Positions 4,556-43,140 of a stretch of 64,000 nucleotides of DNA are shown one piece after another (positions within the stretch are counted from its first letter, which is position 1; each line of letters starts with the position of its first letter). The notes below the pieces were generated by a model. That model made no database searches. It worked only from the letters and a program-made list of their open reading frames with translations, and was not told where the DNA came from. A program made the position numbers and the translations under genes. The stretch is from the NCBI RefSeq assembly GCF_963921235.1, contig NC_086107.1, forward strand, positions 46,934,001-46,998,000, in the 5' to 3' direction. The stretch is from Mobula hypostoma. Its lineage: Eukaryota.

Positions 4556-4779
4556 AGAACCCGGTTTATTATCACTGGCATGTGACAATGGGAAGGAACT
4601 CAGAGTTAAGTTGGGGACTGAGGCATGATGTGAAAACAAGTATTTCATAACAAAAATATTAACTTAAATATTGGAATAGTTGGATAAATGGTCTATAATG
4701 TTTTCTATAATAGCTAAGATAAATGTATGCACAATTTTGTCCAATTCACTCAGTTATATATTTTGTCTTAAATTTATAG

Positions 4780-5133
4780 AAGGAAATTTGAAGCTGAAAA
4801 CGAATAAAGGTCCAGTGGAAGTAATCCTTCACAAAAATAGCCTTCTGCAGTGTGAAATTGCCAACCTGGCTGGGATCTCATTGAACCCAAAGAATTTAGG
4901 CATCTTATGGGTTTTCAGTCAGGGTACTGAAAGAGTAAATATCCTTATGTATTCTAATGGCAACATAACATCTCAATGGGAAGAAGCTGAGCTGTCTGCA
5001 AACGCCATTCAAAATGGAAGCATGTCACTTTTACTGAGAAATGTTACATTGAAACATAGTGGAGAGTACAAGTGTGAGGTTGTTATTCCACCAGATTATA
5101 AAGAATTCGTGATGATGAAGCTTGAAGTTTTAG
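4780..5133 (+). CDS. NCR3LG1: IgV exon (domain 1)
   Basis: tttatag|AAGGAAAT...TTAG|gtaagt; LLQC...ILW...[17 protein letters not shown]; three N-glycosylation sequons (NIT, NGS, NVT). Confidence 0.9.
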
Positions 5134-8100
5134 GTAAGTTGATTTATTTCACATAACTGTAAATTATACAGTGGCATCTTATATGTAAGTTTGTATTTTA
5201 GTGAAAATATTTTTGGAAACAATGTTTTGCCTGAGTATGAAAGCAAAGTTCTACATTTATTGGCGATCCTAATTAAGGACAAAAATTATTGGAAATAATA
5301 TCAGGTAGAAGCTATGAACTGAAAGACAGCCGATGTCTTAGTTTGATTTTGCAGAATAATTTGTGCTTGTGTTTTCTAATCTCATTTTTCATAATGGTCT
5401 GAACGTAAATGTTGTCTCACATGCTGATGATCCTTTACACAACATATTTGTGCAAATGATCGAGTTACTTCAAATGCAAACTTGCAGTAGTTCAAAATCT
5501 TTGCATTCATCATTTCAAATGAATTCAAGTTTAAAATAAAATATGATCAATGTGGTCATGGATTTCAGTCATGGAAAAGCAATGATATAGATGTTGGAAA
5601 TCTGCCACAAAACAGCAAAGTTGAAGCAGTAAAACAGCATTTATGAAGAGAGAAACAACAAATGTTTTGGACTAATGCTCTTTCATCAGAATGTGTTCCA
5701 TTAGCAACAATATGTCAAATAGTGCACTGTTCATTATTGTGTCAGTCAATTCTGCATTAAAAGTGTCAATCATGGAAGGGAGCATTTCCAAAGAGATGTG
5801 CGGAATTCAGAAATTACACAACTCGAGTAAGGATAATGTAACCTATGAGTAAATGTGCAATGTTAGCTGCTTCTTTACATGATACGGAATTAGGTGCTAA
5901 AAAAAATCCTTTTTTTGCTGTGCAATTGGGATAGATTAAAAACCTGCATATTAGCAGTCATGAAATTTTATATTGTCAAAGGTGCATGTATCTAGTGGAG
6001 CTGCAGCTCACAGCTACAGTGACTTGGGTTCAATCCTGCGGAATTGCACGTATTCCCTGTGACACTAAGAGGTCCTTCCAGGTGCTCTTGTTTCCTCCCA
6101 CATCTCAGTCGTATGCTGGTAGGGAGATTAATTGGCTACCGTTAGTGTCCAAATTATTATTGACCCAGCTATAGCTATGATGCTGGTTTTAATCTAAGCT
6201 GTCTTCTGCATTGTTCTTCTATATAACCCATTCATTCTTTTGTCCTTCTCCTATCAAATCATTTCTCAGCTTCAGACTTAAGTCTTTCATAATGATTTTA
6301 GCCTCTCAATTCTACTATTTGTTGATGGTGTCTATGTGTATCCAGGCATATATGTTTGATGTAATCACTGATTTCCAACTTATTTCCTTACAGTTCAATG
6401 CCATTTTTATTGTATACAGTAGCTTTGAAGAACTATTGTAAGATTAATGTACAATTTTTGTGTTACAGCACAACCCACGGTGACTGTTGTTTCCAGAAAG
6501 GTTGTGGAAGTTGGCAATGGTGGCGAGATGTTCTTGGGTTGTCATTTGAATGGATATTATCCTTGTGAAAGCAACGTGGAATGGTTTCAGTCAAGTCCAT
6601 CACAAAGTAAAACAAAACTGTTAACAGATCTATGCATTACCCCACCAGTCAAAAATCCTGATGGAACATGCAAAGTAACCGCTGAAGTTCGGTTTGAACC
6701 TCAGAAAGAAGACATTGGCAGCAGTTTCGGATGTCGTGTGACACATAAGACTTTTGCAGAACCATACACTGTGAATGCTGCAGTGACTTTGAAAGGTTAG
6801 CTGTAGTACACTTGCTTTTTTTTAAAATTAAAATTTGAAGTTTGGAACTTTTAGTTAAGTTCCCATTGAGAGTAACCTTGGTGGATTGCTGCTGTCTGTT
6901 TTAGGCCATCTCTTGGGATCCAAGAAGTCTTGGCTTGGCTCTGATTCTGTAGCTCATTAGGTGACTGATAAGCCAACTTGGGATTTGTTGCCTTATTGGG
7001 ATGGATAGGTACTTTCCACTGTGGGGGAGAGAAGATACGCTTTGCCATCATTTGTACTGGATTTTCATATGATCTTCTGGTTCAAGGTTCTCATTTCCAC
7101 CTAGAATGCTCTTTCTCCACTTTGGGGAATCGTGGGCAGAGATTCCAGAAAATGCCATTGCATTTTTTTCTCGAGACTTTGACAGTAACCTTGAATATTT
7201 TCTGTTGTCCACCCGGTAAATTTGTCTCATGGCATCTTGAAATGGAATGTCTGTTTTATGTGTGAGACCAGAATGAGGTTGGGGCTGGGGTTGTAGTTGT
7301 AGTTGTAAAATTTACTTGGAAAACAAGTCTGATTTTTTTTTAAAGAAAATTTCTTTTCACGTAAAATTTTCAAAGGCTTTTATAGCATTGATTAAACTGA
7401 ATATTAACACAGATTATTTTGGTGGATCTTTATGCTTACATGTATCCATGAACTCTTGCGCAGGTGCAAGTAAATTTAAATACATGTGTATTGTTGATAG
7501 TTATTTTGCCAAAGTGTTGTGCATTTTATGGGAAGTTTCTCACAGTTGCTTCTTTCATCCCATAACTTCACTATCCTTTTTAATCAGGCATTAAGTTTTT
7601 TGACAATTGTGTAACTTCAGAGTTAATTTTACTCGATTTCAAAATACTTTCACTTTCATAAATATTGTGGAAGTTGGCAACGGTGGAAAGATGCTCTTGG
7701 GTTGTCAGTTGAATCATAGGTAGAAAGTAACAAAATTTCTTTCTTTCTCTTTATTTCCTGTGGGTATTTCCTTTTATTAATGGACTTTAAATTATTCCAT
7801 GTTTCAAAATTGTTCCTTAATGACTAGATACTCAACAAAAGATTACAGCTGCTAGGAAAAGACTTTGAAGTGACCATCTTGTAAATTCTTTTGCACTTCT
7901 TTTTAACAGAAGCAGAAATTCGAATATCCAAAAGAGCAATAGTTGGAAGCGTCACTGCAAGCATTATCATCTCTGTATTGCTACTAGGAATAGGAATTTT
8001 TCTTTACATGTGGTACATGTACAAAGGTAATGTCTGTGTATCAGTAATGAATTTGTAGTTACTGACTCAGAGGAAACTTAAATTATTGGGATGGGACACA

Positions 8101-11100
8101 ATAAAAACAATGCTTTTATGCTAGATTTTATAATTTTCTGGTTAACCAGTGCTGCACAGAACTTGCTACAGTTTTGAGATTTTCATTTATTTCATTTGGT
8201 ATTACTAAATGTGAATGTTTAGTCTTTGAATTGAAATTAATTGTGAAATGTTACTGTAAGTTTATTTCATAGTTTGAATAATTTTCATGAACTTCTTGTG
8301 TAGAATCTTTTCTTGAACTCTAATAGTTTGCTTTATAAAGCTGCATAATGTCACTGTTGCTTTTGCATTTTATTGTTGTACAATTAATTTATTTCACTGA
8401 TTCAGCGAGGTTACCAATAACCACTGCTTAGTTCTTTTGGAACTTATGTGAATTGAGTAACACTTACATGGGAAGGAAATTCTAAGGATTAAGTTGTTAA
8501 TTGAGGAAATTGCTATTTGTTAAATTAATTTGTTAACTGCTGCATTGAGGAAAATGATGTTGATTTATTGTTTTTAAATTTACTATTTAGTGCCGAATTT
8601 ATATTTTGCTGGTAGCACAAGGAAGTCTTAGTTTTTTTAGATCTTTGAGCAGTCCTTTTGATCAGTTGGAAAAGCCACCAGTGTGTTTCAAAGTGCTTCC
8701 AATGTAAACTGGACAAAGTACGCTTCAAAAAAACCTTTGTGTAGACTGGCGCAATGTGCTGTCTCTAAACTGTACTGCAGAATGTGAATGTACAGTAGAT
8801 GCGTTATTTTTATTTCACATGTATATTTTAAAACAGCAAACATATTTTGAACTCTTCTCATATTTTGTGTTTTGTTACCTCACTTCTGTGTGGCACATTT
8901 TATGCTTTTTCCACACCTTAGAACTGCAGCAGAACTTTGAACAATGCTAGTAGGCAGCCGTTGATCCCAGGGGATCATGGGTTTGCGCCTCTGGTGGACT
9001 GTGTCCTCTCCAGGGAGCAGGCCTGGGCAGGAAGATTTGAAGAACCGGCTGTTGCCTATGCAGTGGGTTCCCCCTCTCCACGTCACTGATGTAGTTCAAG
9101 GGAAGGGCAAGTGCTGATACAGCTTGGCACCAGTGTCATCGCGGAGGCTGCCAGAGTGAAATTGTAGACAGCATCAAACTGCCTTAGGGCTCCGGATTTC
9201 TTCCTCAGGGTTTACTCCCGAAACCTTTCCCATGGGTGGGTATGGCTGCAAGGCAGTGGAGGTTTAAAATCAGAGTTTTCCTTCTCCTAGTGGGCTGCCG
9301 TCCAAGGCTGATGAACCCTATTGAACATTGCTATTGCCCTATATTTGGTCCCACTTTTACAGGGTGTTTGTTTTTCTACATAATTTAAATTTGCACTAAG
9401 TTTATACATTTATGTTCCTTTTACGTGGCCTTGATTTGGTCGTTATCTGTCAGAAATGCTGATGCCACCTTAGGAATTGTCATTTATGTATTTGGTGTCA
9501 TGGGAATGTAACAGCAGCTTGTAATCATTAAGCATTGTCTTTAAGCTCATCCTAGCAGAATGAGCCATAATAAGGCTGCAGTTCACCTAGCATTGATCTA
9601 ATTTAACTAAGACCATTAGACAGAGGAACAGAATTAAGCCATTCATCCCATTGAGTCTGCTTCACTATTCCATCATGGCTGATATATTATCTTTCTCAAC
9701 CCCATTCCCCTGCCTTCTCCCCATGAACTTTGATGCCCTGACTAGTTGAGAACCTGTCAAATTCTATTTTAAATATAGCCTATAACTTGGCCTCCATGGC
9801 CATCACTGATGAAGAATTCCACAGATTCACCACCTTCTGGCTAAAGAAATTCTTTCTTATCTCTGTTCTAAAGAGATTCCTTGTATTCTGAGGCTGTGTT
9901 CTCTGGCCTTCGACTCCCCCACTACAGGAAACATCCTCTCCATGTGCACTCTGTCTAGGCCTTTCAATATTCAATAGGTTTCAATGAGATCTCCCTCATT
10001 CTTCTAAACTAAGTGGGTATAGGCCCAGAGCCAGCATCTGCTCCTCATATGGGATCCTTTTCATTCGCAGGATCATTCTTATAAACCTCCTCTGGACCCT
10101 TTCCAATACCAGTAACTCCTTAGATAGGGGGCCTAAAATTTCTCACAATACTCCAAATGCAGTCAGACCATTGCTGTATAAAGGCTCAGCATTACATCCT
10201 CCTTTTTATATTCTAGCCCTCTCAAAATGAACGTTAACATTGCATTTGCCTTCTTTACTGTTGACGCAACTTGCAAGTTAACCTTTAAGGAGTGCTGCAT
10301 GTGGACTCCCAAGTCCCTTTATATCTCTGATTTCTGAAATTGCTCACCAGTTAGAAAATAGTCTATGCCTTTATCCTTCTGCCAAAATAGACTTCTCGGC
10401 ACTGTGCTCTGTCTGCCACATCTTTGCCCATTCTCCTAATCTGCCTAAGTCTTTCTGTAAACTCCCTGCTTTCTCAACACTACCTCTCAATGTACCTTCA
10501 TATCATTCACAAACCTGGTTACTAAGCCATCAATCCTATCATCCAGGTCATTGACATATAACATGAAAAGAAGCAGTCCCAATACTGACCCCTGTGGAAC
10601 ACCACTAGTCTCCCACTGGCAGCCAACCAGAGAAGGCGCCCCTTTATTCCTCCTCTTTGTCTCCTGTCAACCAGTCAAAATTCTATCCATGCTGGCATCT
10701 TTTCTGTAATACCATGGGCTCCTATTTTGTTTAACAACCTCATGTAATATTGACTTCTGGATGGCAAACATGAAATATGATTGAAATCAAATAATAGTAT
10801 TTGACAATCAAACTTGAGTCTTCACTAAAGCTTGTTCATCCTAACTGATATTAATTTTCAAGAGAGGTCAAAGATAATTTTGATTAATCCAGGTTTATAT
10901 TTCTTTTTTTTTCTCTCTCAGTTCCACCCAAGTTATCAGATATTCAGTTGCCAGCTCGAATTATACACCAAGAACTTGCAGAGATCACTTGCCATGTGTC
11001 TGGATTCCGACCTAATAAGATTCATGTTTGGTGGTATTTGAAGACACAAAGTGACGCTAGGGAGAAATTAATTGGCGAATTCAAAAGATATCAGATGATA

Positions 11101-14100
11101 GGAAGGTTTTGGGGAAAAAACAGGATACAAGAAATAGAGCTAGGAAATAAAACTCTGGTTAATTGGAAACACCGCACACCAAATTTCCAGGACAATGATG
11201 ATGGAACATACAGCCTTTCTAGCACTGTTGAAGTTTATCCTGATCTAACAATGGATGACAGAGTAGAAGTCATATGTAGAGTGTGGCATCCGACTGGAAC
11301 AGAGGAAAAACATATCTGCTTACGTGTTGATGGAAGTAAGCATTTTTTGAATCAATATAAAGTCATTGCTGTATTGGGAGACTGTGGGCATGTCATATTT
11401 AATTTGTGCAAATGTTAGATCTCCATTACCATTTATGATTAAAATCAATAAGTACCTGTTTGTAGAGCCCGGAATTTACAATCTTGGATTTTCCAATTTA
11501 CTGTGTTGATGTTCTTTACTTTTCTTATGGAGTTCATGTTATTCATTTTTAATTGCATACTCTGCTTTCAAAAGAGTTTGAAAGTTGACATTTTTACTGT
11601 TGAAAGTTGCTATGATGTATTATTAAGTTATGTGAGAATAGATCTTCTGCCTAGCAGATGGATTAGTTTTATGTACGTACATCCAGTATAGTAAAATAAT
11701 TTATTTAAAGGCATTCTTACACAGTTATAGATAATATATGTGCCACCAAGAAATATAATATAAGGAAATAAATTTACTCCACTTTTTAAAATGTACAATA
11801 TACGAAAATGGATCTGGAACCAGGACTATAGGCTCAATGTGCTGGAGGACCTCAGCAGGTCAGGCAGTGTCTATGGATGGGAATAAACAGTTAACGTTTC
11901 AGGCTGAGATGTCGACTGTTTATTCCCATCCATAAATGCTGACTCCACCAGCACATTGTGTGTGTTGCTCTAGATCTCCAGCATCTGCAGTATTTCATGT
12001 GTCTAGGACTATAAGCTCAGAAGGATGAAGGAAGTATTGTAGCAATGCCTTAGATAGGGACTGAGATAGTACCTCTATTGAAGTCCATAAAGCACTTCCA
12101 CTCCAAAAGTTGCTGTCAGGACTAGATCAATTTGAAAAGTTAAACTAAAATTTAAAGAATTTTGTCAGGATTTCTGTATTTTCTCAGTGTTAGGAAACGT
12201 CATAGCATTTTACAGCCAAAGGAAAACTTTTGAAATTTAGTTAGTTACAAAATTGGGAACAGGTTGTGGAACCAAGGTAAATTATTGGAAACTAAGATAA
12301 AGTGAACTTCAAGGACTAGTTGAACATCGGGACTGGTTTGTGGGCTGAACGACCAATCTTTTGCTTGACTGTCCTTGATGAGATGATCATTTTGCTAATT
12401 TGCCCTGAAATGCAGAGCTGCACCACTGAGTCTGAAAATTGCGGCATGTGAAAGAGAAATTAGAGATACTGCATGAAGCATACAGGATGTCAGAGGAGCT
12501 CAGCAAGTCAGGCAGCATCTATAACGAGGAATAAACAGTCAATGTTTCACACTGGGACTCCTCATCAGGACTGTAAAGGAAGGGGGAAAAAGTCAGGTTC
12601 TGATTCTGGTTTCTTTCTCCTTTCTTTCCTGTCCTGATGAAGGGTCTCAGTCCAAAACGTCGACTCTTTATTCCTCTCCATAGATGCTACCTGACCTGCT
12701 GAGTTCCTCCAGTGTTCTGTGTGTGTTTCTCTGGATTTTCAGCATCTTGTGTTTATAAGATAGGAATAAATTAGAATGGGAAAATTGGATGGGGACTAGA
12801 CATGTTGCAAAGAAAGTTAAAGTATTTCAAGCCTGAAGTATATGTGCAGTTTAATTTCTGTATTGTAAATGACTTTTCATTTTATGAATTTGATATAAAT
12901 ATACTATAACATTTTCTGAAAGAGGTTATATACAAGTTAAACTGATTTTACTTTCTTTTTCTCTTTAGTTGCTCCTAAATTGTCCGACATAATTATACCT
13001 CATGTTGTGCAGCATAACAGTTTAGTGATGCTGACATGTCCAATAAATTTTTTCAAGCCCCGTCCTTTAGTAATCAAATGGTATAGAAACATAAAAGGGG
13101 AGAAATCACTCCTGATGGACACCGAAGATGAAGTAACTTCCTCTGTTGGCCGATATTCTCATAATGTGAAAGAGTTTAGTTTTCCTGGCAACACTTACAG
13201 TGTCTACAGCATGTTGACCTTTAAAGCAACAGTACAAGAAGATGATGGTGATGAGTATTTCTGTGAAGTGGATCACGTGAGTTTGAAACATCCAGAAGAA
13301 AAATGTATTAAGCTGGATGTAAAAGGTAACTCGGATTCTAAGTTCTTGATAGTACACTTTTTGTTAAAATGCATAGTCATCTATCCTTTGTTAACATTAC
13401 TACGAGATATTTCAACCAGAGACAATAAATGATATTTCACTGAGGTATTTTTTTACTGACTAATACTTTCAACTTTAATCATTTATTACTTGTATCTCTG
13501 TGGCATCCGTGTAAATCCCAGTTATTATAAATTGTGTTCCTGTGATTCCAGCTTTCTTTGTATGGGATTCTTATTATGTTTTTAAAAAGGGAGAACATCG
13601 TCAGTCCTTTAGAATATATTTAAGAGAGACAAATGGTGAAATAATAAAGTGCTAAGTTGTGATGTCAATCTAACTGAATCTTCCATGATTCTGTATGTGT
13701 GTTTTATTACGCCATATGATTCAAGTTCCACTGATTCAGCCCTTATAAACAAAACACAAGCAAATTTCACATTTTATAGATTTGTGATAGGGAAAATCCT
13801 TAGTTTTGTATTCTACAGCTAGTGTATTCTACATCTGAAATAAGAATACTTGATACTGGTAGTGAACATACAGTAGTTTGTGAGATAGTTCTGTTCTAAC
13901 ATCTCTGTCTCAAGAGCTAGCTGATAGAACAGGTGAAGGTTTTGATTTCAGGAATTTTCTGCTTTAACTTCCTTCCAGTGAACTAGTTTTTTTATTATTA
14001 AGTATGCTCTACTTTCAGTTGTAATTCCTTGGATATTAATGTGCAAAATTGCCCCTGCATTTTCTACATTACAAATTATTGTAATGTAGAAAATGCAGGA

Positions 14101-17100
14101 GCAATGCCAGGGATGTTTATTTCTTCCTTCTTTGTGTTTTATTTCATTACTTATTCTGATATAATTTAATGCCGCTCACTACAAGCAGATTCAGATTGCT
14201 TATTGGTTGAACTATGTATAAGATATGTTAATTAGCACTTTTGAACACCATCACATTTTTTTCTAAAGTTTAGGATATCCTATCCTTAGAATTACATTCA
14301 AGATTACCATGTACCATTCAAATACATACGAGTAATACAGTTGAAAGTGTCATATTTTGACTGTGCTGTTAAGCACATTACTGATCTCACAGTTCAAGTG
14401 GATGTTATAGATTCTCTGGTACAATTTTGAAAAATAATCTGGCACATTGTGCTTTTTAGTTAAAATGTTTTGAATTCTGAGTGTGTTTGTCAGGAATATG
14501 AAATATACATATGAACTTAGAAAAACTTTAATTATTTCTGTTTTGCAGCATTTCCTTCACTTAATCCCATCCTGTGTGACCCAGTGAACCCTAGAATAGA
14601 CAAAGAGTTGACTCTTTCTTGCAACGTGCATTCATTTTATCCTAAAGAAATTACTGTCCAGTGGTTCAAAGATAAGAAGGCGATAATGGACTTTGAAACA
14701 TCTGAAATAATTGAGAATCCTGGCAACGAATTGTATGAATTAACCACTACTTGCACAGTAACTCCAACGTTATTGGACTTAGAGAGTAAATACCGATGTC
14801 AGGTTAATCACAAAACCCTTTTACTTCCAAAGTTTGTGGAATATATTCCTGAAAGTTTAGGTATGTTTATTTTCTTGTCATGAACTTAACTATATTTAAA
14901 CAATATAAAGCTTTTTGTTATAAGTTATCTATGTTTTAATTCTGTACATTGCATTCACACAGTTTTCAGTCAACATTCCTTTTTCCTGCACAATGAGTCT
15001 AGTCAGAAAAGTAGATGCTCCAGTTCCTCACACTTGGGAACACAATAGTACTCTAAACACAGTAGGACAATAAGTAAGTGTAATTAGTAGATGTAATTAT
15101 ATAGCTAGACTGCTTGCCAGGACTCTGTTTACACTTACTTGCCTCTTTCGTGCCTTAGAGACTCTTGAAGATTCTGGAGTACCTCTTGATTTCGGGTTCC
15201 TTTTGCAATGTAGGAACCTTTGGCCATGGAAAAATAATCTTGCTGTTAAATAATTAGATTACATTGAAGAGCAATGCTTAATACTGAATGACTTGTTACT
15301 GATCAATTTCAAAGTGGACGGGGTAATGATAAAATTACGAGGAATATTAAAAATCCTATTTCTGAAAAACACGAATAATGATATTCAGTATGTATCGCCT
15401 GACTGAGCATTAACTATTTCTGAAAAATCTTAAAGATGCAATTCTGGTTGATGATGTATAATGCTAGGTAATGTTCCAAAGTCTTGATAACCACCCTACG
15501 GTAGTGCACCCATTCATTCTGGATTAATTCTTGTTATTTTTTGAAAAGATCTGTAAAATACATCTCATGGGGCTTTTGATTAGAAAGATTACATTAGTTT
15601 CAACTTGATCATGGACAAAGATAGATCTGGTCCTAGGGTTGAGGTTCTTAACTGGAAGAAGGCCAAATCTGAAGAAATGAGAAAGGATCTAAAAAGCGTG
15701 GATTGGGACAGGTTGTTCTCTGGCAAGGATGTGACTGGTAGGTGGGAAGCCTTCAAAGGAGAAATTTTGAGAGTGCAGAATTTGTATGTGCCTGTCAGGA
15801 TTAAAGGCAAAGTGAATAGGAATAAGGAACCTTGGTTCTCAAGGGATATTGCAACTCTGATAAAGAAGAAGAGGGAATTGTATGACATGTATAGGAAGCA
15901 GGGAGTAAATAAGGTGCTTGAGGAGTATAAGAAGTGCAAGAAAATACTTAAGAAAGAAATCAGGAGGGCTAAAAGAAGATATGAGGTTGCCTTGGCAGTC
16001 AAAGTGAAGGATAATCCAAAGAGCTTTTACAGGTATATTAAGAGCAAAAGGATTGTAAGGGATAAAATTGGTTCTCTTGAAGATCAGAGTGGTCGGCTAT
16101 GTGCGGAACCAAAGGAAATGGGGGAGATCTTGAATAGGTTTTTTGTGTCTGTATTTACTAAGGAAACTGGCATGAAGTCTATGGAATTAAGGGAAACAAG
16201 TAGTGAGATCATGGAAACTGTTCAGATCGAAAAGGAGGAGGTCCTTGCTGTCTTGAGGAAAATTAAAGTGGATAAATCCCCGGGACTTGACAGAGTGTTC
16301 CCTCGGACCTTGAAGGAGACTAGTGTTGAAATTGCGGGGGCCCTGGCAGAAATATTTAAAATGTTGCTGTCTACAGGTGAGGTGCCGGAGGATTGGAGAG
16401 TGGCTCATGTTGTTCCGTTGTTTAAAAAAGGATCGAAAAGTAATCCGGGAAGTTATAGGCCAGTAAGTTTAACGTCGGTAGTAGGTAAGTTATTGGAGGG
16501 AGTACTAAGAGACAGAATCTACAAGCATTTGGATAGACAGGGACTAATTAGGGAGAGTCAACATGGCTTTGTGCGTGGTAGGTCATGTTTGGCCAATCTA
16601 TTGGAGTTTTTGGAGGAGGTAACCAGGAAAGTGGATGAGGGGAAGGCACTAGGTATTGTCTACATGGACTTCAGAAAGGCGTTTGACAAGGTCCCACATG
16701 GGAGGTTAGTTAGGAAAATTCAGTCACTAGGTATACATGGAGAGGTGGTAAATTGGATTAGACATTGGCTCAATGGAAGAAGCCAAAGAGTGGTAGTAGA
16801 GAATTGCTTCTCAGAGTGGAGGCCTGTGACTAGTGGTGTGCCACAGGGATCAGTGCTGGGTCCATTGTTATTTGTCATCTATATCAATGATCTGGATGAT
16901 AATGTGGTAAATTGGATCAGCAAGTTTGCTGATGATACAAAGATTGGAGGTGTAGTAGACAGTGAGGAAGGTTTTCAGAGCCTGCAGAGGGACTTGGACC
17001 AGCTGGAAAAATAGGCTGAAAAATGGCAGATGGAGTTTAATACAGAGGTGAGGTATTGCATGTTGGAAGGACAAACCAAGGTAGAACATACAGGGTTAAT

Positions 17101-20100
17101 GGTAAGGCACTGAGGAGTGCAGTGGAACAGAGGGATCTGGGAATACAGATACAAAATTCCCTAAAAGTGGCATCACAGGTAGATAGGGTCGTAAAGAGAG
17201 CTTTTGGTACATTGGCCTTTATTAATCAAAGTATTGAGTGTAAGAGCTGGAATGTTATGATGAGGTTGTATAAGGCATTGGTGAGGCCGAATCTGGAGTA
17301 TTGTGTTCAGTTTTGGTCACCAAATTACAGGAAGAATATAAATAAGGTTGAAAGAGTGCAGAGAAGGATGTTGCCGGGACTTGAGAAACTCAGTTACAGA
17401 GAAAGGTTGAATAGGTTAGGACTTTATTCCCTGGAGCGTGGAAGAATGAGGGGATTTTTGATAGAGGTATATAAAATTATGATGGGTATTGATAGAGTGA
17501 ATGCAAGCAGGCTTTTTCCACTGAGGCATGGGGAGAAAAAAACCAGAGGACATGGGTTAAGGGTGAGGGGGGAAAAGTTTAAAGGGAACATTAGTGGGGG
17601 CTTCTTCACACAGAGAGTGTTGGGAGTATGGAATGAGCAGCCAAACGAGGTGGTAAATGCGGGTTCTTTTTTAACATTTAAGAATAAATTGGACAGATAC
17701 ACCTCCCATCCATGTATGGAGGGATATGGTCCGTGTGCATGTCAGTGGGACTAGGCAGAAAATGGTTCGGCACAGCCAAGAAGGGCCAAAAGACCTGTTT
17801 CTGTGCTGTAGTTTCTATGGTTCTATGGTTAAAATGTAACAAGAAGGAATGAAACTACTTCTCATTCTTTGCGGAGTTAATATTAAGTGACAATTTCTGG
17901 TATACCGGGAGACCTGAGTGAACATTTAAATTGATCGCTAAATGTTGATAGTCCATGCTGTGGCATTCTGTTAATTTATAAACACTAATTCTATTCAAAA
18001 TACATGTTACCAAAAAGTTTGTGGAACATCTACCTCAAACAAAATTTAAGCTGTATTTTAGCTTTTCTTATTTCTCTTTATAGTATGTTCGCCCAAAATA
18101 AATGAAATTACCTGTGATCCTGTCAACCCTGAAATTGGGAAGGCATTGACCTTGGCCTGTGAAATAAAGGAGTTTTATCCAGAGGAAATTCAAATTGATT
18201 GGTTCAAAGATAACGTGAGAATAAATGAAAATACAAAATATGGAATCATTAATGAAGAATTAAAAAGTGAAAATGGTTTATACAACAAAGTCACCAAATT
18301 AATGTTGATTTCAAGCTCTGCTGATCATCAAGCTGAATTCAGAGTTGAAGCTTATCATTCAAATTTGTCTGCAAAACCCCAGAACCAATGCTTTCAATTG
18401 TTTCTTAAAGGTGAGTTAAAATTTTCTGTATATTGAAGTGTGGTATCGGAAAGAAGATTTTTATTGAGAGTAGCAGCCAGAGTTTATTGCAAGACCTGCT
18501 CTGAGAATGTTAATTGAGAACTATTTGAGTATTATAATGTCACATGTGCAACCACCATTCTACAGGGGCTGGGGGTGGAAGAGGATGGTACAGGAGGGTC
18601 ACTATTCTTAGGGAAGGGTGCGTATCATGTTCGTCCAGGATTCATAGCCACACTATCTGTACATGCATCAAGAAATTTGAGTTGAAAAAAGTACTTATTT
18701 TGTTCACGTAAATTCTAAGATTAAATTTTAATTCAAATCTCAGGTTTCAGAACAGTAATTGGTGAATTCTGTAACATGGGGGGAGGGTCACTTGTGATTA
18801 TCCAATTTTGTACTTCCTTTGCTTTCCTTTCATTCTGAAAAGGGATGGTTCAGTTTTTTTGTGAAGATTAAAACCTAATTAGTTGTTGATATGCAGCTAT
18901 ATGCTATATTCCTGCTTTCTCTTAGTCTGAGTAAATTGAATACATATAAGCACTGAAGATGAAGAAAAAGACCTAACTACTTCCTTCTGATGTTCACTGA
19001 CCATTGACAATCTGCCCCACCATTCATACCCTGGAATCACTACTGATCAGAAACAACCAAACTGGGCGTGTACATACAATAGCATACCAGAGCAAATCAG
19101 AAGCTGGATATCCGGTGGTGATTTGTACATCTGACTCTATACGGTGTCTACTTCACTGACAAGACTGGGTCTGGAGTATAATTGAACATTGTTCTCTGGA
19201 TGTATTAGTGCTGTGCTAACTAGCCAGGATATTGCAGGCAAGGCACCCAATACAAATATCCATTGTCTTCATCATTAGCTACCTGCAAATGCTGCTTCCC
19301 ATGTGAATAACGCACATAAAGTGTTGGTAATACTTTAATTACACCTCCTAAACCTCCACTGCTTAGAAATGACCACACCAGGTGCATGGGACCATATTGA
19401 AGCCACATGACTTGAACATGTATTTCTTTCACTCACATGGACCATGCTGTCTAAATTTGCCATCTGTAGGACCCACTTGGCTGCACCCAGTTGTTGTCCA
19501 GAGAAGGCAGTGGGTTTAATTTTGCACGCAGGTCTCAGATTTCGAGTACTTGACATCTCAGGCCATCTTGGCAGCTGATGACAGTTTGAATGATGTCAAA
19601 TTTGTCTGAAGTAGGGAACAGTTATAAATAGAGTATAATTAAAGAGGCAGGCCATTAAAAATCATATTAAAATACTAACAAATAATTATGCTAAAATTAA
19701 GTCTATTTTTATTTTACGGATGAGAACATAGAGACAGCAGGGCTGTCGGAGGCTACTGCACTTGAGTGATCTATCTATCTGTCTGTGTCTGACTCTGCCT
19801 GTCTTTCTCTTTCTGTCTCGCTCTTTCTCTTTTGATGGGGGGGTGGTGGGGGAAGAGTCTGCTGGTTCTCAAGTTGGGTGAGCTCGAATAAACAGCACTG
19901 GGGACTGCAACATCGAAACAGCGAGCTGTTAGTCTGACCTCTTGCTGTGACAGGAGTGATACCTCTTCCTCCCTTGTTGGTGAGAGAGAGAGAGCCTGTG
20001 GCATGTTGAAGTGCTGGGTCATGGACTGTAGTTTTTGATAAACTCTAGATCATGGTCTCTCTGGGGGCTTGCTGTTGCTTGCATGGTGGGCGGTGGGGCT

Positions 20101-23100
20101 GATGCTTCCTGCTGGAGAAGACGGGGAAGGGGAGGGTTGATGCTTTGCTGCTGCCATTAGGAGGGAGGGGGCTTTGTGGTTCTAACACTTTTCTGTCATT
20201 CATTCTTTGATGTTTTCTTCTGTTTTGTGGATGTCTGTGAAGAGTAAGAATTTCAGGCTGTAAACTGTATACATTCGCTGATATTAAATGGAATGATTCA
20301 ATCTTTGCCTTTTTCCACTGGTTGATTTCTTTCAATTGATTCCATGGGTATGTCATTACCAATGTGACATGAATTAGACCTTACCTGCCCCTCATCACTA
20401 TTCCACTATTTGAGTCAGTTGTGTGCCCAGTGATGAAGCCAGCAATTATATATGTTAACATCAGGCTTCAGGGCATCTCAGAATTCTAGGATTTCCTTGT
20501 AGTCTGATAGCTGGTGTTCCCAATGGAGACACTAATTGTTGCTAAGTTTGGTTTAGACAGTTATAGTGGAGCCAAAATTCTGTTACCTTTTCACGTAGCG
20601 GCATGATGAGAAAGCATTAATACTTTTCTTCAGTTTTTCAAGGATGGGTGGAAATAGACAAAACTGCTACCATTGTCACCAACACCTAATGTCAAAGAAT
20701 TGCTTAAGAAAAGGCTTGGAAATATATTATGCCCATATCAAGTCTTCTGTAGCTATTAAATATGATTTCTTTTCATTGTAGGTGCACCGAGATTTTCAGA
20801 CTTCAACATCGAGCCAAAGATTCCATCGTATGGTCATCATTTATCTGTGTCTTATAGGGTGTATGATCTTCCAAGTAAAGATTTTACTTTTGAGTGGTAC
20901 AAAGGAGCTGAGCCTGTGAAAATAGGAGTAACTCATTCAGATTTTGTATGTACCCCTCAGAAGACTTACAATATAGAGAGTTGCCTTAATTTTGTAGTGA
21001 TCGCAGAAGACTTTGGAAAAGAGTTAGTCTTTCTGTGTAAAGACCATTCTAAAAATGAATTCAAAAAACACATGCAACTTCCCCTGAAAGGTGAGTGAAT
21101 TGCAGAAATGCTGTTTTAATAATATTTTTAAAATTGCATATAACAGGCATTGAAGATGATAAGGATTTTTGCAAAAAGTTCAGAAGAATGTTTTTTTTTG
21201 TTCATCACGGTTCATGGGTTTTTAGAAGAAACTTCTTGTCTTTGAATGTCTAATCCAATGTGAGGCTCTTCACGTGGAGATCTGTGACAACCAAGAACAG
21301 AGAAACCAACAGAGAAGTTGTCTGCCTAGTCAGATGAAAGAATCTTCACACACACTCATTTGCTCAGTAAAGGGTAAAAATATATATTGTGTAGAAAGTA
21401 TAATAATCATTGTTGTCATGGAGTTGTACAGCACACAAGTAAGCCCATTTTCTGACCACATCCATGCAGATTCTTTTAGAGTCAAAGAGCACTTTAGCAC
21501 ATAAACAGGCTCTTTGGCCTATTTAGTCAGTATGAACTATTATTCTGCCTAATCCCATTGACCTGTACCTGGACCATCGCCCTCCTATCCATATATTTAT
21601 CCAAGCATGTTAAATAATAAAATCAAACCCGGATACACTACTTCTGCTGGCAGCTCATTCTATACTTTCACCACCCTCTGAGTGAAGGAGTGCCCCCCCA
21701 TGGTCCTAGTACATATTTAAACTTTCACCTTTAATCTATGACCTCTAGTTCTAGTCTCATCCAAACTCAGCAGGGAATAAAAGCCTGCCCTATCTATGCC
21801 CCTCATAATTTTGTATACCTCTACCAAATCTCCCTTCTTTCTCCTACGCTCCAAGGAATGATGTCCTAATCTATTTAACCTTTCTCTATAATTCAGGTGC
21901 TCATGTTTTGGCAAAATCCTTGTAATCTTCCAATCTTATTAATATCTTTCCTGTAGATAGGTGACCAGAACTGCACACAATACTTCAAATTAGGCCTCAC
22001 TAGTGTCTTATACAACTTCATTGTAACATCCCAACTCTTGCACTCAATACACTTATTTATGAAGGCCATTTCCAAATCTCTTTTGTTTTGCTGCATTCCT
22101 CATTGCCCTACCATTCACTGTGCAAGTCCTAATCTGGTTTGTCCTCCCAATGTGCAGCACTTCACACTTGTCTGCATTAAATTCAATTTGCCATTTTTCA
22201 GCTGTTCTAGATCTCACTGATAACCTTAAGAGCCTTCCTTCCTACACCCCAGTTTTGGTGTCATCTGTAAGATTGCTGAACTAGTTTCCCACATTATCAT
22301 TCAAAACATTAATATAGATATCGAACAACAACAGACCCAGCGGCACACCATAAGGCACAGTCCTCCATTCAGAGAGGCAAACATCTACTACCAGAACCTT
22401 CTTGACCAACTTTCCATGTGGGATCCTGTTAAAGGCCTTGCTAAAGTATGTGTTGACAACATCCTTTGACTTTCATTCACCAAATTTCCTGGTAACTGCC
22501 TCAAAAATTTCTATAAGACTGTTTAGACATGACCTACTATGCACAAACCATGTCGACTATTTTGCCTCTCTATACTGACTACGTATGCACACATTATGAC
22601 CATATAATCCTCCTTTGCCTTGCCTGTTTGATTCCACCACCTTCTGTGGCAGCAGATTCCAGATATAAGGCAGCCTCTGTGCAGATTAATTTGTACATTT
22701 TGGATTAAGGGAAGTACCTAAAGGAAGAAAAATACGAAAAAACTTGTTTTATTAATTTTTATTGGAAACTTAATATTTCTCAAATTAAACTTTCAAGTCC
22801 TATGAGGATGTTATAAACTAGCTATACTTTTTAATGATTTGCTGGCAGTTTCTAAGTTTGGTAGTTAGTAGTTAGCCTGATTTTGTAGCTTGCGTACAGA
22901 TTCCATTGTCACAGACTATAGAAATACAGACTTTGAAGTGAAAGAGTATCATTGCATATACATTAAGAAATTCTTGGTCAGATATATTGTGAATGCCAGA
23001 GGTTGCTGAATGACTTGTTCATTTCAGTAGATATTGCATACAGCTAATTTATTTTGTTTGTACAGTTTCTTAATATAAATTAAGTACAATGGATTCCAGT

Positions 23101-24281
23101 TAATTGGGACACATTGGGACCAGTACATTTTGGTGCAATTAAGCGGTTGCCCCAATTAGCTGAAGTTTCATGGAAATAGTTACAAAGTATAAAAATGACA
23201 AACTACCATTTAACTGAATAACAATGTATGTATTTAAATGAAATACAGAACAAATTAGAATACTACCAACACCTGTACAGTAATATACAGAGTATCAATT
23301 CCAAATATTTATCAATGGAGGAATTCATTTGCCATGTTCTCTTGATTGTAAATGAACAAAATCAGCACTGACACCTAGTGCAGATAATGGATTGCCTTCC
23401 TACAATGCTTTAGATAACTGCATCCATCACATCTTCATTTTCATTGTAACATTCAAGAAGATTGTGGATACCTTTGTAATTTGTACCTTGTTGAAGAAGT
23501 GAAATCATTTCATTTTCACTCCCAGCTGTTTCTGGCATCTCCAAGCCTGAATACTTGAAACCACAGTGAGCAAAACAGTTCTGAGTGTTTTGCTGGTTAT
23601 TTCTTGTTGACTGTAAGTGCCAAAAATCACTGCTTTTTGAACACAAGAATATATAACTGATTCTACTTAAAACCTGTTTACTCTAAGCACAGTGTAATGT
23701 TTAAAGGTCACTCAGTGCACGCGATTGACATTATTTAGACACTGTCCAGCAATAGTCTCCTGCCCCAGTTAAGCAGCATAGTGTCCCAAGTTAATGAAGG
23801 GAATCCTGGTTATTTTCCGGATTTAGTTTTTATTCTTTAAGATTTGTCCCAAATATGTGGCTGCCCCAATTAACTGTTGACCCAATTAACAAGATTCCAC
23901 TGTATTTTAGCTGCTTATTAATGAAGCTATTGAACAGTTAATTGTATTCCATATTTGTGTCTTATTTCCATAGCTGTGCCTCCTGAAGTATCAGAAATCA
24001 AGTGTACTCCTGTTCAGCCGAAAATGGGTGGAAATGCCACTCTTACTTGCAGGATTGAACACTTTTGCCCAGTGGATATAGATGTAGTGTGGACACAAGG
24101 ATCAAAGACATTGAAGGATCAGCAAGTGGTAGAAGTACCGGAAATGAATGAAAATGGACTGTACTCCACAATTACAGAACTGCCAATTGTATTAACAGGA
24201 GATTCAAAAACTTATATTTGTGAAATTCGACATGCACCGTCCGATGATATTGTAGAAAAGACATTCACATTACAGATTTAA
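4780..24281 (+). CDS. NCR3LG1: NCR3LG1 (B7-H6)-like multi-exon gene: IgV-IgC1-TM-6xIg. Exons 4780-5133, 6469-6795, 7910-8026, 10922-11335, 12969-13325, 14549-14860, 18084-18410, 20782-21090, 23974-24281; about 941 aa without leader
   Basis: All exons have AG/GT boundaries, all junctions are phase 1, and the frame is open to TAA at 24279-24281. The V domain (LGILW...[11 protein letters not shown]) resembles B7-H6. It lies tail-to-tail with KCNJ11, as human NCR3LG1 does. Confidence 0.8.
5985..6190 (+). mobile_element. Degenerate V-SINE/HE1-like tRNA-derived SINE
   Basis: B-box GGTTCAATCC followed by a V-domain-like core (ccaggtgctcttgtttcctcccacatc...ttaattggct); boundaries approximate. Confidence 0.5.
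6469..6795 (+). CDS. NCR3LG1: IgC1 exon (domain 2)
   Basis: gttacag|CACAACCC...AAAG|gttag; [10 protein letters not shown]...VEW...NPDGT...FGCRVTH. Confidence 0.9.
7910..8026 (+). CDS. NCR3LG1: Transmembrane exon (not in the ORF track)
   Basis: ttttaacag|AAGCAGAA...AAAG|gtaatg; 117 nt encoding [39 protein letters not shown], with a hydrophobic run of more than 20 residues. Confidence 0.85.
8948..9320 (-). mobile_element. Short RTE-derived non-autonomous element
   Basis: Minus strand begins with an RTE-type 5' UTR motif (ggcagcccactaggagaaggaaaactctgattttaaacc); no long ORF; boundaries approximate. Confidence 0.45.
9620..10745 (-). mobile_element. Old CR1 LINE 3' fragment
   Basis: ORF 9780-9974 has [20 protein letters not shown] (CR1 ORF2 C-terminus); decayed RT upstream. 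Confidence 0.75.
10922..11335 (+). CDS. NCR3LG1: Post-TM Ig exon (domain 3), C1-like with long insertion
   Basis: ctctctcag|TTCCACCC...GGAA|gtaagc; [10 protein letters not shown]...VWW...DDGTYSLSS...VICRVWH; 138 codons. Confidence 0.85.
12470..12750. repeat. Inverted pair of Penelope pseudo-LTR fragments, each with a decayed hammerhead core
   Basis: Cores at about 12537-12572 (-) and 12630-12665 (+); the arms are complementary. A collapsed copy lies at about 11830-12005. Confidence 0.6.
12969..13325 (+). CDS. NCR3LG1: Post-TM Ig exon (domain 4)
   Basis: tctttag|TTGCTCCT...AAAG|gtaact; [10 protein letters not shown]...IKW...YFCEVDH. Confidence 0.85.
14549..14860 (+). CDS. NCR3LG1: Post-TM Ig exon (domain 5)
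   Basis: ttttgcag|CATTTCCT...TTAG|gtatgt; [17 protein letters not shown]...YRCQVNH. Confidence 0.85.
15594..17830 (+). mobile_element. 5'-truncated CR1 LINE (RT region) in the intron between domains 5 and 6
   Basis: ORFs 15605-17014 and 17056-17754 have [21 protein letters not shown]; tail gtttctatggttctatgg. Confidence 0.92.
18084..18410 (+). CDS. NCR3LG1: Post-TM Ig exon (domain 6)
   Basis: ctttatag|TATGTTCG...AAAG|gtgagt; [17 protein letters not shown]...NGLY; F-strand Cys replaced by Val. Confidence 0.85.
19735..20295 (+). repeat. Interspersed non-coding repeat (LINE-tail/SINE-like)
   Basis: GC-richer block ending in gtatactgtatacatt...gatattaaatgg-type tail; family not assigned. Confidence 0.35.
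20782..21090 (+). CDS. NCR3LG1: Post-TM Ig exon (domain 7), divergent
   Basis: cattgtag|GTGCACCG...AAAG|gtgagt; LSVSYRV...FEWYK...VFLCKDH; B-strand Cys replaced by Tyr. Confidence 0.8.
21480..22560 (-). mobile_element. Decayed CR1 3' fragment
   Basis: ORFs 21717-21914 and 21893-22096 ([24 protein letters not shown]). Confidence 0.75.
23087..23902. mobile_element. Tigger/pogo-type (Tc1/mariner) non-autonomous element
   Basis: Imperfect 22-bp TIRs caatggattccagttaattggg / cccaattaacaagattccactg with TA on both sides. A partial copy lies at about 26530-26810. Confidence 0.7.
23974..24281 (+). CDS. NCR3LG1: Post-TM Ig exon (domain 8), ending in the stop codon
   Basis: tttccatag|CTGTGCCT...ATTTAA; [10 protein letters not shown]...VVW...NGLYS...YICEIRH. 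Confidence 0.85.
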
Positions 24282-41199: not shown

Positions 41200-43140
41200 C
41201 CCTGCCACCCGTCAGCCTGGGGGAGAGGTGGTGCTGGGGTCACGAATCATTGGGTTGGGAGGTTGAGGACCTCCTCCTCACTCCGGGCGAAATGTCGAAG
41301 GCGGCAACCGGTCCTTCGCTCCCGACGGCCTGCTCCTGCTCCAGCTGCTGGGCGCCGAGGGGCGGCGTGGGCACCTTCACAGTGTTGCCGAATTTCGAGT
41401 AGTCGACCGAGTAGCGGCCATCGTCCTCGTTCACCACCGGCACGAAGCGGTGCCCCCACAGGATCTCGTCGGCCAGGTAGGAGGTGCGGGCTTGGGTGGT
41501 GATGCCAGTCGTCTCGACCACCCCCTCGAGTATGACGACCACCTCGAAGTCCTGGCGCTGCAGGTCGGCGGCCGTCAGGTGGTAGAGGGGGCTGTCGCGG
41601 TCAATAACGTGCGCGACGATGAGCGGCGAGACGAGGAAGATGGCACCGCCGCCCACCGGGTTGTCGAGCAGCACGTCGATCTGACGCAGTGGCTGCACCT
41701 CGCCCTCGGTCGTGGTCGTGCGCCGCACCACCTGGATGCGGATGCTGGCTCCGATAATCATGCTCTTGCGCAGGTCGCCCACGCGGAACATGAGGCAGAG
41801 GCGGCCGTTCCGCGGCGAGATGACGGCGAACTTGCTGAAGATGAGCGTCTCGGCGCGCCGGTGCGCCTGCGACGTCTTCATGAAGATGCAGCCCAGCATG
41901 ATAGCGTTAATGACCAGCCCCACGATGTTCTGCGCTATCAGAACGGTGATGGCAGCCGGGCACTCCTCGGTGATCATGCGGCCGCCGAAGCCGATGGTGA
42001 CCTGCACCTCGATGGAGAAGAGGAAGGCTGAAGTGAAGGAGTGCAGGCTGGTGATACAAGGCACGGCGGGCGGCGCGGCGCCGTTCAGGTCGCCGTGCGC
42101 GAAGGCGATCAGCCACCAGATCATGGCGAAGAGCAGCCAGCTGCACAGGAAGCTCATAGTGAAGATGAGCAGTGTATGTCGCCACTTGAGGTCCACCAGT
42201 GTGGTGAAGACATCCTGCAGGAAGCGGCCCTGCTCTCGGATGTTGGTGTGCGCGACATTGCAGGCGCCGTTCTTATTGACGAAGCGTACCTTACGCTGCT
42301 TCTCCCGGTAGCGCGGCCGCGACACGTCCTCCACCAGCCGCAGTACATACTCCTCGGGGACGAGGTCCTTTCTGGCCAACATCCCCGGCCCATTGCCGAC
42401 TGCCCGTCTGAACTCAGCCGAAGTCACGGCGAGAGAGGCGGAGAGGAGCAGTCCCACTCTGCCCGGCTCTGCTCATCAGCTAAGGAAGGACGCGAGGGGA
42501 GGGGATGTGAAGGGAGGGGAGGGCACGATGTCGTCCACCAGCAGCAGCTTCAGCTGCCGCCGCCAATCATGACCGTAACTAGATAGGGGAGGCTGACGGG
42601 CTCCGGTGTCCGGCAGTTCCTGACCCGCGGCTTCCCCAGCCGTGCTGTCGGTATTGGCAGCAGGTCCTCCCTCTCTCACTGGCACCAGTGATCGCCTTCG
42701 CGCATGTAATTAGATTTTGGCTAGCAACTGCTCGGGAAGGAGACGCTTTCTCTATTATCTCTCTTGGGTATCAATACCTTTGAATATGACTCTTTAAAAT
42801 ATCACTAGCATTAAGGTTGTCTGAATTGTTTTAAACAGGCGCTGCATCAGCACTTGTAGCTATGCGGCCAGGTTAACCCACGGTGATGCAGAGGCTTCCA
42901 CGTATGGCATCTTTCACGGGTTTGTACACCTGTACAAACATTTTCAGGCTTAGCGCTTGACCCTTGGATATTTTGAGCCTCGCTGTTCGAAGCACAGTGC
43001 AGCACAGCAAGCGTAGTTGGGCCATTAGTCATGTACTCGCCCAGCATTAAGTCGGACTGGATTTTCCAGTCGGTAATCAATCAAGGGAAGCGCGTGGAGA
43101 TCAGGTTGCCGCTCGCCCTGTGCGTCTATATTCCCGTCTT
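41200..43140. promoter_or_regulatory. CpG-rich island covering KCNJ11 and its 5' region
   Basis: Visibly GC- and CpG-dense against an AT-rich background; not computed. Confidence 0.6.
41240..42382 (-). CDS. KCNJ11: ATP-sensitive inward rectifier K+ channel Kir6.2, 380 aa, intronless CDS
   Basis: MLARK...PEEYVL start, TIGFG filter, FSK (K185 equivalent), [18 protein letters not shown] retention motif. Short M1-pore loop, no CDS intron, and adjacency to ABCC8 favour KCNJ11 over KCNJ8. Confidence 0.93.

Follow-up and report, generated by a model that had tools for sequence, protein, structure and literature searches.

The window, a stretch of 64,000 nucleotides from the ray Mobula hypostoma (NCBI RefSeq assembly GCF_963921235.1, contig NC_086107.1, positions 46,934,001 to 46,998,000 of the forward strand), holds a nine-exon gene that encodes a V domain, a C1 domain, a transmembrane (TM) segment in an exon of 117 nt and six C1-set Ig domains. 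KCNJ11 (Kir6.2), the synteny anchor, lies 17 kb downstream of this gene, tail to tail with it. The features are the following, with exon joints written as donor>acceptor:

4780..5133, + strand: V-set Ig exon (ectodomain domain 1); Pfam V-set E 5e-10; best PDB relatives human B7-H6
6469..6795, + strand: C1-set Ig exon (ectodomain domain 2); Pfam C1-set E 1e-10; RNA joint 6795>7910 in 4 runs
7910..8026, + strand: transmembrane exon, 39 aa, 117 nt, no stop, phase-1 donor; Kyte-Doolittle (KD) peak; RNA joints on both sides
10922..11335, + strand: tail Ig domain 1 (Ig3), C1-set; Pfam C1-set E 6e-9; joint 8026>10922 (GT..AG) in 4 runs
12969..13325, + strand: tail Ig domain 2 (Ig4), C1-set; Pfam C1-set E 2e-9; length sums place it in the 3138-nt contig
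14549..14860, + strand: tail Ig domain 3 (Ig5), C1-set; Pfam C1-set E 1e-15; length sums place it in the 3138-nt contig
18084..18410, + strand: tail Ig domain 4 (Ig6), C1-set lacking the F-strand Cys; Pfam C1-set E 1e-8; joint 18410>20782
20782..21090, + strand: tail Ig domain 5 (Ig7), divergent C1-like, canonical Cys pair lost; Pfam C1-set E 0.097; RNA joints on both sides
23974..24281, + strand: tail Ig domain 6 (Ig8) and stop TAA at 24279-24281; Pfam C1-set E 2e-10
41240..42385, - strand: KCNJ11 (Kir6.2); phmmer against PDB Kir6.2 E 7e-182, from ORF residue 25

All nine exons are bounded by AG/GT splice sites, are phase 1-1 and form a single open frame of 941 aa. A preliminary description of 4780-24281, made from the sequence alone, had reported a TM exon with an open phase-1 donor and no stop, about 675 aa in six further in-frame phase-1 Ig exons and a protein that ends at the last Ig strand, and every detail of this structure was confirmed: the splice sites are canonical, the part after the TM exon comes to exactly 675 aa, and its C-terminal end is the last beta-strand. 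The Ig8 exon continues past the stop into the 3'UTR, and the way the protein ends is conserved among orthologues. Ig3 carries a long C-D insertion and begins one residue (Lys) past the hydrophobic span. In Pfam, the first exon is V-set and the remaining seven Ig exons match C1-set best; Ig3-6 and Ig8 score 35.6-58 bits against a C1-set (PF07654) cut-off of 21, and Ig7, at 13.5 bits below that cut-off, aligns with the other domains and is a predicted beta-sandwich. In every tail exon an I-set match is either lacking or much weaker than the C1-set one, and the ray tail domains are not I-set-like, in contrast to intracellular I-set Ig proteins of the titin, palladin and MyBP-C type.

In two Mobula species, all nine exons are found in order on spliced RNA contigs some 3 kb long, and contigs from six runs and two organisms support the exon joints of the ray gene; the evidence consists of assembled contigs, and the library type of the runs is a guess. 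The junction 8026>10922, singled out earlier as the one to check, is present in four runs, as is 6795>7910, and both 18410>20782 and 21090>23974 were seen as well. One contig of 3138 nt holds every exon: its Ig3 and Ig7 pieces are 996 nt apart, exactly the summed length of Ig4, Ig5 and Ig6. Splicing at a GT just after the stop was ruled out, as the contigs run unspliced from 23974 past 24379. Since all Ig exons share phase 1, accidental in-frame joining would be easy, and read-through from a short B7-H6 gene into a separate Ig-array gene downstream might have given a fusion transcript, or the tail might be translated yet serve no function. Transcripts in which the TM exon splices to a short tail and the last six domains form a separate gene, which the preliminary description had named as its refuting case, were not found; the contigs join C1 to TM to Ig3. 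A short tail exon or second leader in the intron at 8027-10921 was likewise rejected, RNA depth there being zero or due to high-copy repeats, and no leader-like exon precedes Ig3.

Because the TM exon is phase 1-1, skipping it would keep the frame, and a secreted eight-Ig protein could then be the functional product, with the TM-containing mRNA minor or regulatory; the conserved Cys pairs of the tail described below would be explained in this way. The contigs of four runs, however, include the TM exon, no 6795>10922 joint is among the RNA joints listed, which outrank 30 weaker ones, and the array follows the sole TM in those contigs as well as in all NCBI isoforms examined. Neither the RNA contigs nor the six NCBI isoform pairs, which differ at the N-terminus, at the C-terminus or within Ig7, contain a TM-less form, and the TM exon has a mean pairwise identity of 0.63 across 15 species. 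We therefore regard exon skipping as very improbable.

The model is identical at 940/940 aa to NCBI XP_062918063.1 (LOC134353707, "uncharacterized protein", 965 aa), and that NCBI protein (P0219) adds a classical signal peptide, MGRTGSS...PLSEG. Full-length orthologues all begin with a classical signal peptide, with n-h-c leaders ending in small residues, and in a skate transcript (L001) the leader is preceded by an in-frame upstream stop. No convincing combination of ATG, hydrophobic core and phase-1 donor was found in 1-4779, nor did a six-frame search of the 64-kb window with the Mobula leader give a match, which places the leader exon upstream of the window. A Kyte-Doolittle scan gave a single TM-class peak of 2.46 over 19 aa, in keeping with the earlier remark that no second hydrophobic exon is present; a second hydrophobic segment is ruled out, the next peak reaching only 1.34. 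Judged by such heuristic scans, the protein has the cleavable signal peptide and the single TM helix of a type I membrane protein. The preliminary description had made its topology conditional on a normal leader upstream, and this leader exists in the identical NCBI protein and in all full-length orthologues.

The human B7-H6 gene adjoins KCNJ11/ABCC8 in convergent orientation, and its product has a non-Ig, Gag-related tail. The kinship of the ray ectodomain with B7-H6, noted before as a likeness, is plain from a phmmer search of the PDB with P0158:26-252, in which the top three matches are human B7-H6 (NCR3LG1) entries (3PV6, 4ZSO, 6YJP; E 1e-19 to 4e-19) that cover both the V and the C1-type domain, the next match being an IgG constant region at E 1e-12. 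Together with the adjoining, convergent KCNJ11, this search supports the assignment of the ray gene as a probable B7-H6 orthologue. Like human B7-H6, the ray protein is of type I with a single TM; unlike it, the ray protein has a tail of six C1-set Ig domains, 675 aa in length, with no Gag-related sequence. Orthologue models are named NCR3LG1 by NCBI in Amblyraja radiata and Rhinophrynus dorsalis and mostly "uncharacterized" elsewhere, with the same domain order.

Orthologues of 941-974 aa occur in sharks, rays and a chimaera, and the same nine-exon product is found in at least 15 cartilaginous-fish species. In lungfish and caecilian proteins the six tail domains recur in matching positions, and polypterids, coelacanth and amphibians have relatives with other tail lengths. 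The ray tail domains find their best match in the domain at the same position for 6/6 in the chimaera and 5/6 each in lungfish and caecilian, the individual tail domains have mean pairwise identities of 0.51-0.64 versus 0.61 for V, and pN/pS between the ray gene and M. birostris-like transcripts is 0.27. These identities, the pN/pS ratio and the positional orthology show the tail to be under constraint. A read-through fusion or a functionless tail, at odds with the breadth of the nine-exon product, the positional orthology and the pN/pS value, and with the bare 8027-10921 intron, is already largely refuted and is the least probable of the explanations considered.

A word-based search from the polypterid protein yielded no clear teleost or amniote member, and sheep and goat matches proved to be fused SIRP models outside the family. 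On the sequences compared, the V-C1-TM-six-Ig layout is judged to predate the split of the jawed vertebrates and to have been present in their common ancestor. Somewhat more probable than the reverse, in our estimate, is a history in which B7-H6 has had, from the gnathostome ancestor onwards, a working cytosolic tail of six C1-set domains, with an expansion of the array in amphibians, a Gag-derived tail in mammals and no such tail among the sampled teleost and amniote matches.

A signal peptide and only one TM helix place the six C1 domains in the cytosol by standard topology rules, and we infer the location of the tail from these rules and from sequence statistics. Across 96 family members the 12-residue TM flanks carry net charges of -0.3 N-terminal to the helix and +2.7 C-terminal to it (p 9e-15), with a median hydrophobic core of 25 aa. 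In the family, 88% of the pre-TM C1 domains and 50% of the post-TM domains have the canonical Cys pair, as compared with 38/38 domains (100%) in control arrays from four proteins whose TM is C-terminal and of which one begins with an Ig heavy-chain V region, and the core (C-strand) Trp is retained in about 92% of tail domains. Sequons number 1.32 per 100 aa before the TM, 1.72x the shuffled expectation, and 0.64 per 100 aa after it, 1.11x the expectation (p 6e-14 for the comparison). The charge, Cys and sequon statistics come from proteins that are related to one another, and their p-values therefore overstate independence; the flanking charges, the half of the tail domains that lack the disulfide and the chance-level sequons favour a cytosolic tail.

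Some features of the tail would also fit an oxidising, glycosylating compartment. In M. hypostoma the canonical pair is lost in Ig6 and Ig7 (2/6 tail domains) and kept in Ig3, Ig4, Ig5 and Ig8, where it is retained in 14-15/15 cartilaginous fishes; several extra tail Cys are conserved in cartilaginous fishes too, and a sequon in Ig4 (model residue 421) is present in 11/15 of these species; further tail sequons lie at model residues 342, 721 and 860. Core Cys conservation is possible without a disulfide, given that the B-strand Cys of Ig6 is invariant (15/15) yet partnerless. The six C1 domains could accordingly have an extracellular or ER-luminal role, either through a leaderless isoform with a type II signal anchor or through non-canonical biogenesis, the full-length form then being secondary. 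The conserved Cys pairs and the Ig4 sequon are in line with this, as are the flanks of the M. hypostoma helix, which are atypical in being more basic before it (net +2) than after it (+1), two N-truncated isoforms that NCBI predicts in sharks, one of 808 aa in Scyliorhinus torazame with 159 residues missing at its start and X2 of Chiloscyllium plagiosum with 40 residues missing there, and the established knowledge that C1-set domains otherwise occur only outside the cytosol. Against it, every RNA contig over that region (four runs) joins C1 to TM to Ig3 with V upstream, the TM exon was not seen joined to any alternative first exon, the family-wide flanks obey the positive-inside rule with a cytosolic C-terminus, and half of the tail domains family-wide are without a disulfide, with sequons at chance level. 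We consider such a location unlikely, if less so than exon skipping.

The cytosol-facing C1 array proposed in the preliminary description thus stands in its structural part, and the leader, the single TM and the family statistics lean towards the proposed orientation, with the conserved Cys pairs and the sequon pulling against it. AlphaFold2 predicts all tail domains as folded (pLDDT about 80-94), with Ig3 at about 80-87 outside a disordered loop and Ig7 as a beta-sandwich above 80; because the TM helix is not modelled (pLDDT 30-42) and the inter-domain geometry is not fixed (pTM 0.42), the prediction is uninformative on topology.

With a probability of roughly 0.7, we read the ray gene as a B7-H6 orthologue of type I, with a V+C1 ectodomain, one helix and a cytoplasmic tail of 675 aa built from six C1-set Ig domains, ancestral in jawed vertebrates. 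Cleavage of the signal peptide would leave the V and C1 domains outside the cell, the single helix would stop transfer, and the six C1-set-derived domains would start directly behind it in the cytosol. By analogy, the ectodomain may present to an NKp30-like receptor and the folded tail may serve in scaffolding or clustering; the preliminary description had suggested an intracellular scaffold or sensor linked to NKp30 engagement. Pairing is a classical role of C1 domains, and beta-sandwich domains occur inside the cell in the B30.2 domain of butyrophilins and the FnIII tail of integrin beta4.

Butyrophilins (BTN/BTNL), also of the B7 superfamily, share the V-C ectodomain, the one TM and a beta-sandwich on the cytoplasmic side, and the intracellular B30.2 domain of BTN3A1 functions in ligand sensing and inside-out signalling; the ray tail differs in being C1-set Ig rather than PRY/SPRY and in having six copies. 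Integrin beta4 is likewise a type I receptor with a long cytoplasmic array of beta-sandwiches of a usually extracellular kind, its four FnIII domains and Calx-beta domain forming a scaffold for plectin and hemidesmosome proteins, but it belongs to an unrelated family and domain type, so that the analogy is one of design only. The tail domains themselves find their best PDB matches in IgA1 CH and SIRP C1 domains. Tandem phase-1 C1 exons are likewise seen in Ig heavy-chain constant regions, SIRP alpha/gamma and UrIg/UrIg2 (PMC12227049), whose arrays are N-terminal to the TM or secreted, whereas the ray array is C-terminal to its only TM.

The caution about novelty voiced at the outset was justified, in that public databases already contain gene models of this kind, most of them labelled "uncharacterized protein"; those of the same family at NCBI are automatic predictions without comment on topology or tail. 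In the literature, which we covered in part and in which an earlier mention is possible, we came across no account of Ig domains that follow the B7-H6 TM, and as far as we could find the architecture is seemingly undescribed. Textbooks treat C1-set domains as hallmarks of Ig, TCR, MHC and partner proteins; to our knowledge, these domains always lie outside the cytosol. If our preferred reading is true, this would be the first intracellular use of C1-set domains, behind the only helix of an NK-cell ligand; alternatively, an unknown route of membrane-protein biogenesis would be exposed. It would also mean that ancestral B7-H6 was V-C1-TM-six Ig and the mammalian Gag-like tail a later replacement, that the NKp30 ligand gains an unrecognised intracellular scaffold or clustering module, and that in fishes and amphibians the NKp30 axis may be subject to clustering driven by the tail or to inside-out control. 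The family genes are expressed and annotated in more than 20 genomes, which opens the question to immediate study.

The B7-H6 (NCR3LG1) orthologue of Mobula hypostoma is a conserved and expressed gene, in which the only transmembrane (TM) segment precedes six constrained C1-type domains. Translation of the open frames and reading of their boundaries gave nine exons, all of phase 1-1 and with canonical AG/GT sites; the coordinates given in the preliminary description are exact.

Exons of the B7-H6 orthologue (positions within the window; Ig3 to Ig8 are the six tail Ig exons)
4780-5133, forward strand: V exon, Pfam V-set
6469-6795, forward strand: C1 exon, Pfam best family C1-set
7910-8026, forward strand: TM exon, sole TM-class hydropathy peak
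10922-11335, forward strand: tail Ig exon 1 (Ig3), Pfam best family C1-set
12969-13325, forward strand: tail Ig exon 2 (Ig4), Pfam best family C1-set
14549-14860, forward strand: tail Ig exon 3 (Ig5), Pfam best family C1-set
18084-18410, forward strand: tail Ig exon 4 (Ig6), Pfam best family C1-set
20782-21090, forward strand: tail Ig exon 5 (Ig7, seventh Ig exon), Pfam best family C1-set, weak match
23974-24281, forward strand: tail Ig exon 6 (Ig8), Pfam best family C1-set

Joined, the exons encode 941 aa without leader. The stretch behind the TM exon measures 675 aa with a TAA immediately beyond the last β-strand, in agreement with the six in-frame phase-1 Ig exons of about 675 aa described initially, and the hydropathy scan bears out the reported absence of a second hydrophobic exon, as its single TM-class peak reaches 2.46 over 19 aa and no other peak exceeds 1.34. 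The C1-TM intron contains a partial duplicate of the C1 exon: a fragment of ~52 nt (7663-7716, forward strand) that matches the exon's B-strand portion (6502-6555) at ~90 % identity and has zero RNA depth.

The translated model is identical at 940/940 positions to LOC134353707 of M. hypostoma (XP_062918063.1, 965 aa) and shares 97.6 % identity with its M. birostris counterpart. XP_062918063.1 has an additional 25-residue leader of classical n-h-c layout; as no exon encoding it was found anywhere in the 64-kb window, the leader exon lies upstream of the window. Independent evidence comes from the skate RNA contig L001 (3886 nt), which holds one ORF with a leader and an in-frame stop before it, so that the normal leader presupposed by the preliminary description is found in both.

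Transcript evidence was drawn from short-read assemblies of runs whose library type could only be guessed. Single contigs of 1.7-3.2 kb from four runs and two organisms join 6795>7910 as well as 8026>10922, the step from TM exon into tail, both with GT..AG sites. These contigs also join 18410>20782 and 21090>23974 (four runs, two of them new) and continue unspliced from 23974 across the stop to past 24379, while in a 3138-nt contig the 996 nt separating the Ig3 and Ig7 pieces correspond exactly to Ig4, Ig5 and Ig6. Therefore, one assembled mRNA carries the complete set of nine exons, from V through Ig8. The contigs are RNA-derived, because the introns are absent from them. RNA contigs gave no coverage at 8040-8900, and deeper in the TM-Ig3 intron solely high-copy repeats are covered. 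Organism B of the RNA runs bears M. birostris substitutions.

The three best solved relatives of the ectodomain are human B7-H6 entries, covering both domains at E about 1e-19, seven orders of magnitude better than the next family. As in the human arrangement NCR3LG1-KCNJ11-ABCC8, the ray gene neighbours KCNJ11, which lies 17 kb downstream on the opposite strand (E 7e-182 to Kir6.2). The KCNJ11 frame (41240-42457, reverse strand) is a GTG-started ORF with 24 extra codons ahead of the conserved Met, the Kir6.2 alignment starting at residue 25. NCBI already uses the name NCR3LG1 for the Amblyraja orthologue and for a Rhinophrynus relative. Among solved structures, the tail comes closest to the constant domains of IgA1 and to the C1 domains of SIRP alpha and gamma. 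AlphaFold2, run on a 17-sequence alignment, predicted all tail domains as β-sandwiches (pLDDT about 80-94, above the ectodomain), with the TM segment and an Ig3 insertion disordered and inter-domain geometry not fixed.

A HMMER search with the Ig3 exon against 1.84 billion representatives returned 155 proteins, many of which (600-2158 aa) start with a hydrophobic segment, have their TM around residue 230-330 and continue with several C1 stretches. A follow-up search yielded full-length orthologues of 941-974 aa, all labelled 'uncharacterized protein', from Callorhinchus, seven sharks and several batoids. When 15 sequences from cartilaginous fishes are compared in pairs, identity averages 0.51-0.64 in the tail domains, 0.61 in V and 0.73 in C1, and the juxtamembrane motif and C-terminal ending are conserved. 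The surveyed tail exons differ from M. birostris-like transcripts by seven synonymous and seven non-synonymous changes (pN/pS 0.27). In local alignments of ray domains, same-position domains scored highest against chimaera in 7/7 cases, against lungfish in 6/7 (the exception a near tie) and against caecilian in 6/7 (the exception a truncated last domain). Judged by these scores, the six-domain tail is, domain by domain, older than the divergence of bony from cartilaginous vertebrates. The family also extends to polypterids, coelacanth, lungfish, frogs, newts and caecilians, and some of these proteins have many more domains in the tail; the family matches included no clear member from teleosts or amniotes.

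Paralogues from Dendropsophus (P0001), Heterodontus (P0002) and Xenopus (P0172) share the V-C1-TM start and have much longer tails, with up to about 20 C1-like stretches in proteins of 1515-2597 aa in all; in Heterodontus, Pristis and Callorhinchus, one chromosome-scale contig carries both a paralogue and the orthologue. The predicted isoform X1 of Carcharodon carcharias (P0213) adds 14 residues past the usual C-terminus of the last Ig domain; no other tail extension was seen among the orthologues.

By topology rules, a protein that loses its signal peptide by cleavage and has one stop-transfer helix ends with its C-terminus in the cytosol, and we put the probability that the six-domain tail is cytosolic at roughly 70 %. 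In family statistics, which are drawn from related sequences and thus not independent, the TM core has a median of 25 aa, and the 12-residue flanks of 96 members carry net charges of -0.3 (N side) and +2.7 (C side), as the positive-inside rule expects for type I anchors. One HMM pipeline found the canonical Cys pair in 88 % of C1 domains before the TM, 50 % after it and 100 % of 38 control domains from arrays with C-terminal TM, the core Trp being kept at near 92 %. Relative to shuffled sequences, N-glycosylation sequons are 1.72x as frequent as expected ahead of the TM and 1.11x behind it (medians 1.33 and 0.59 per 100 aa; extracellular controls 0.85-1.25), and none of the NCBI isoforms examined lacks the TM exon. 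Against a cytosolic tail, however, stand the Cys pairs of Ig3, Ig4, Ig5 and Ig8, retained in 14-15/15 cartilaginous fishes, one Ig4 sequon retained in 11/15, and the N-flank of M. hypostoma itself, which is more basic than its C-flank. The B-strand Cys of Ig6 is invariant although its partner is missing in 15/15 cartilaginous fishes, hence core Cys conservation alone is no proof of a disulfide. The cytosolic placement proposed in the preliminary description is thus favoured by topology rules and family trends, while these retained features count against it.

By analogy with the B30.2 domain of butyrophilins and the FnIII tail of integrin beta4, and because C1 domains tend to pair, the tail might form a rigid scaffold for clustering the ligand or for recruiting partners from the cytosol, which would couple the interior of the presenting cell to recognition by NKp30. 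As anticipated by an initial caution on novelty, the gene itself is not new, its sequences being publicly available as automatic models. In the papers searched, neither the architecture nor what it implies appears to have been described.

The window also holds several retroelements. A LINE-type element on the gene's own strand in the Ig5-Ig6 intron (15605-17754, forward strand) has its RVT_1 domain (E 4e-30) in a 469-aa ORF, with a 232-aa ORF behind it. A related LINE is present in two neighbouring copies in the interval that separates the B7-H6 gene from KCNJ11 (27894-31644, reverse strand), with an RVT_1 ORF (28521-29456, E 3e-33) and endonuclease-like and C-terminal ORFs; similar minus-strand fragments at 9.6-10.7 kb in the TM-Ig3 intron have very high RNA depth. 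The stretch 1-2000 ahead of the V exon, where GC skew (-0.33) and AT skew (-0.28) are both strongly negative, is probably a repeat. An ORF of 531 aa (34038-35633, reverse strand), situated in a GC-rich block (50 % GC), gave no Pfam match at 1e-5; by eye it is reverse-transcriptase-like, with a C-terminal GIY-YIG-like motif as in Penelope-like elements, and 53.5-54 kb holds a fragment related to it.
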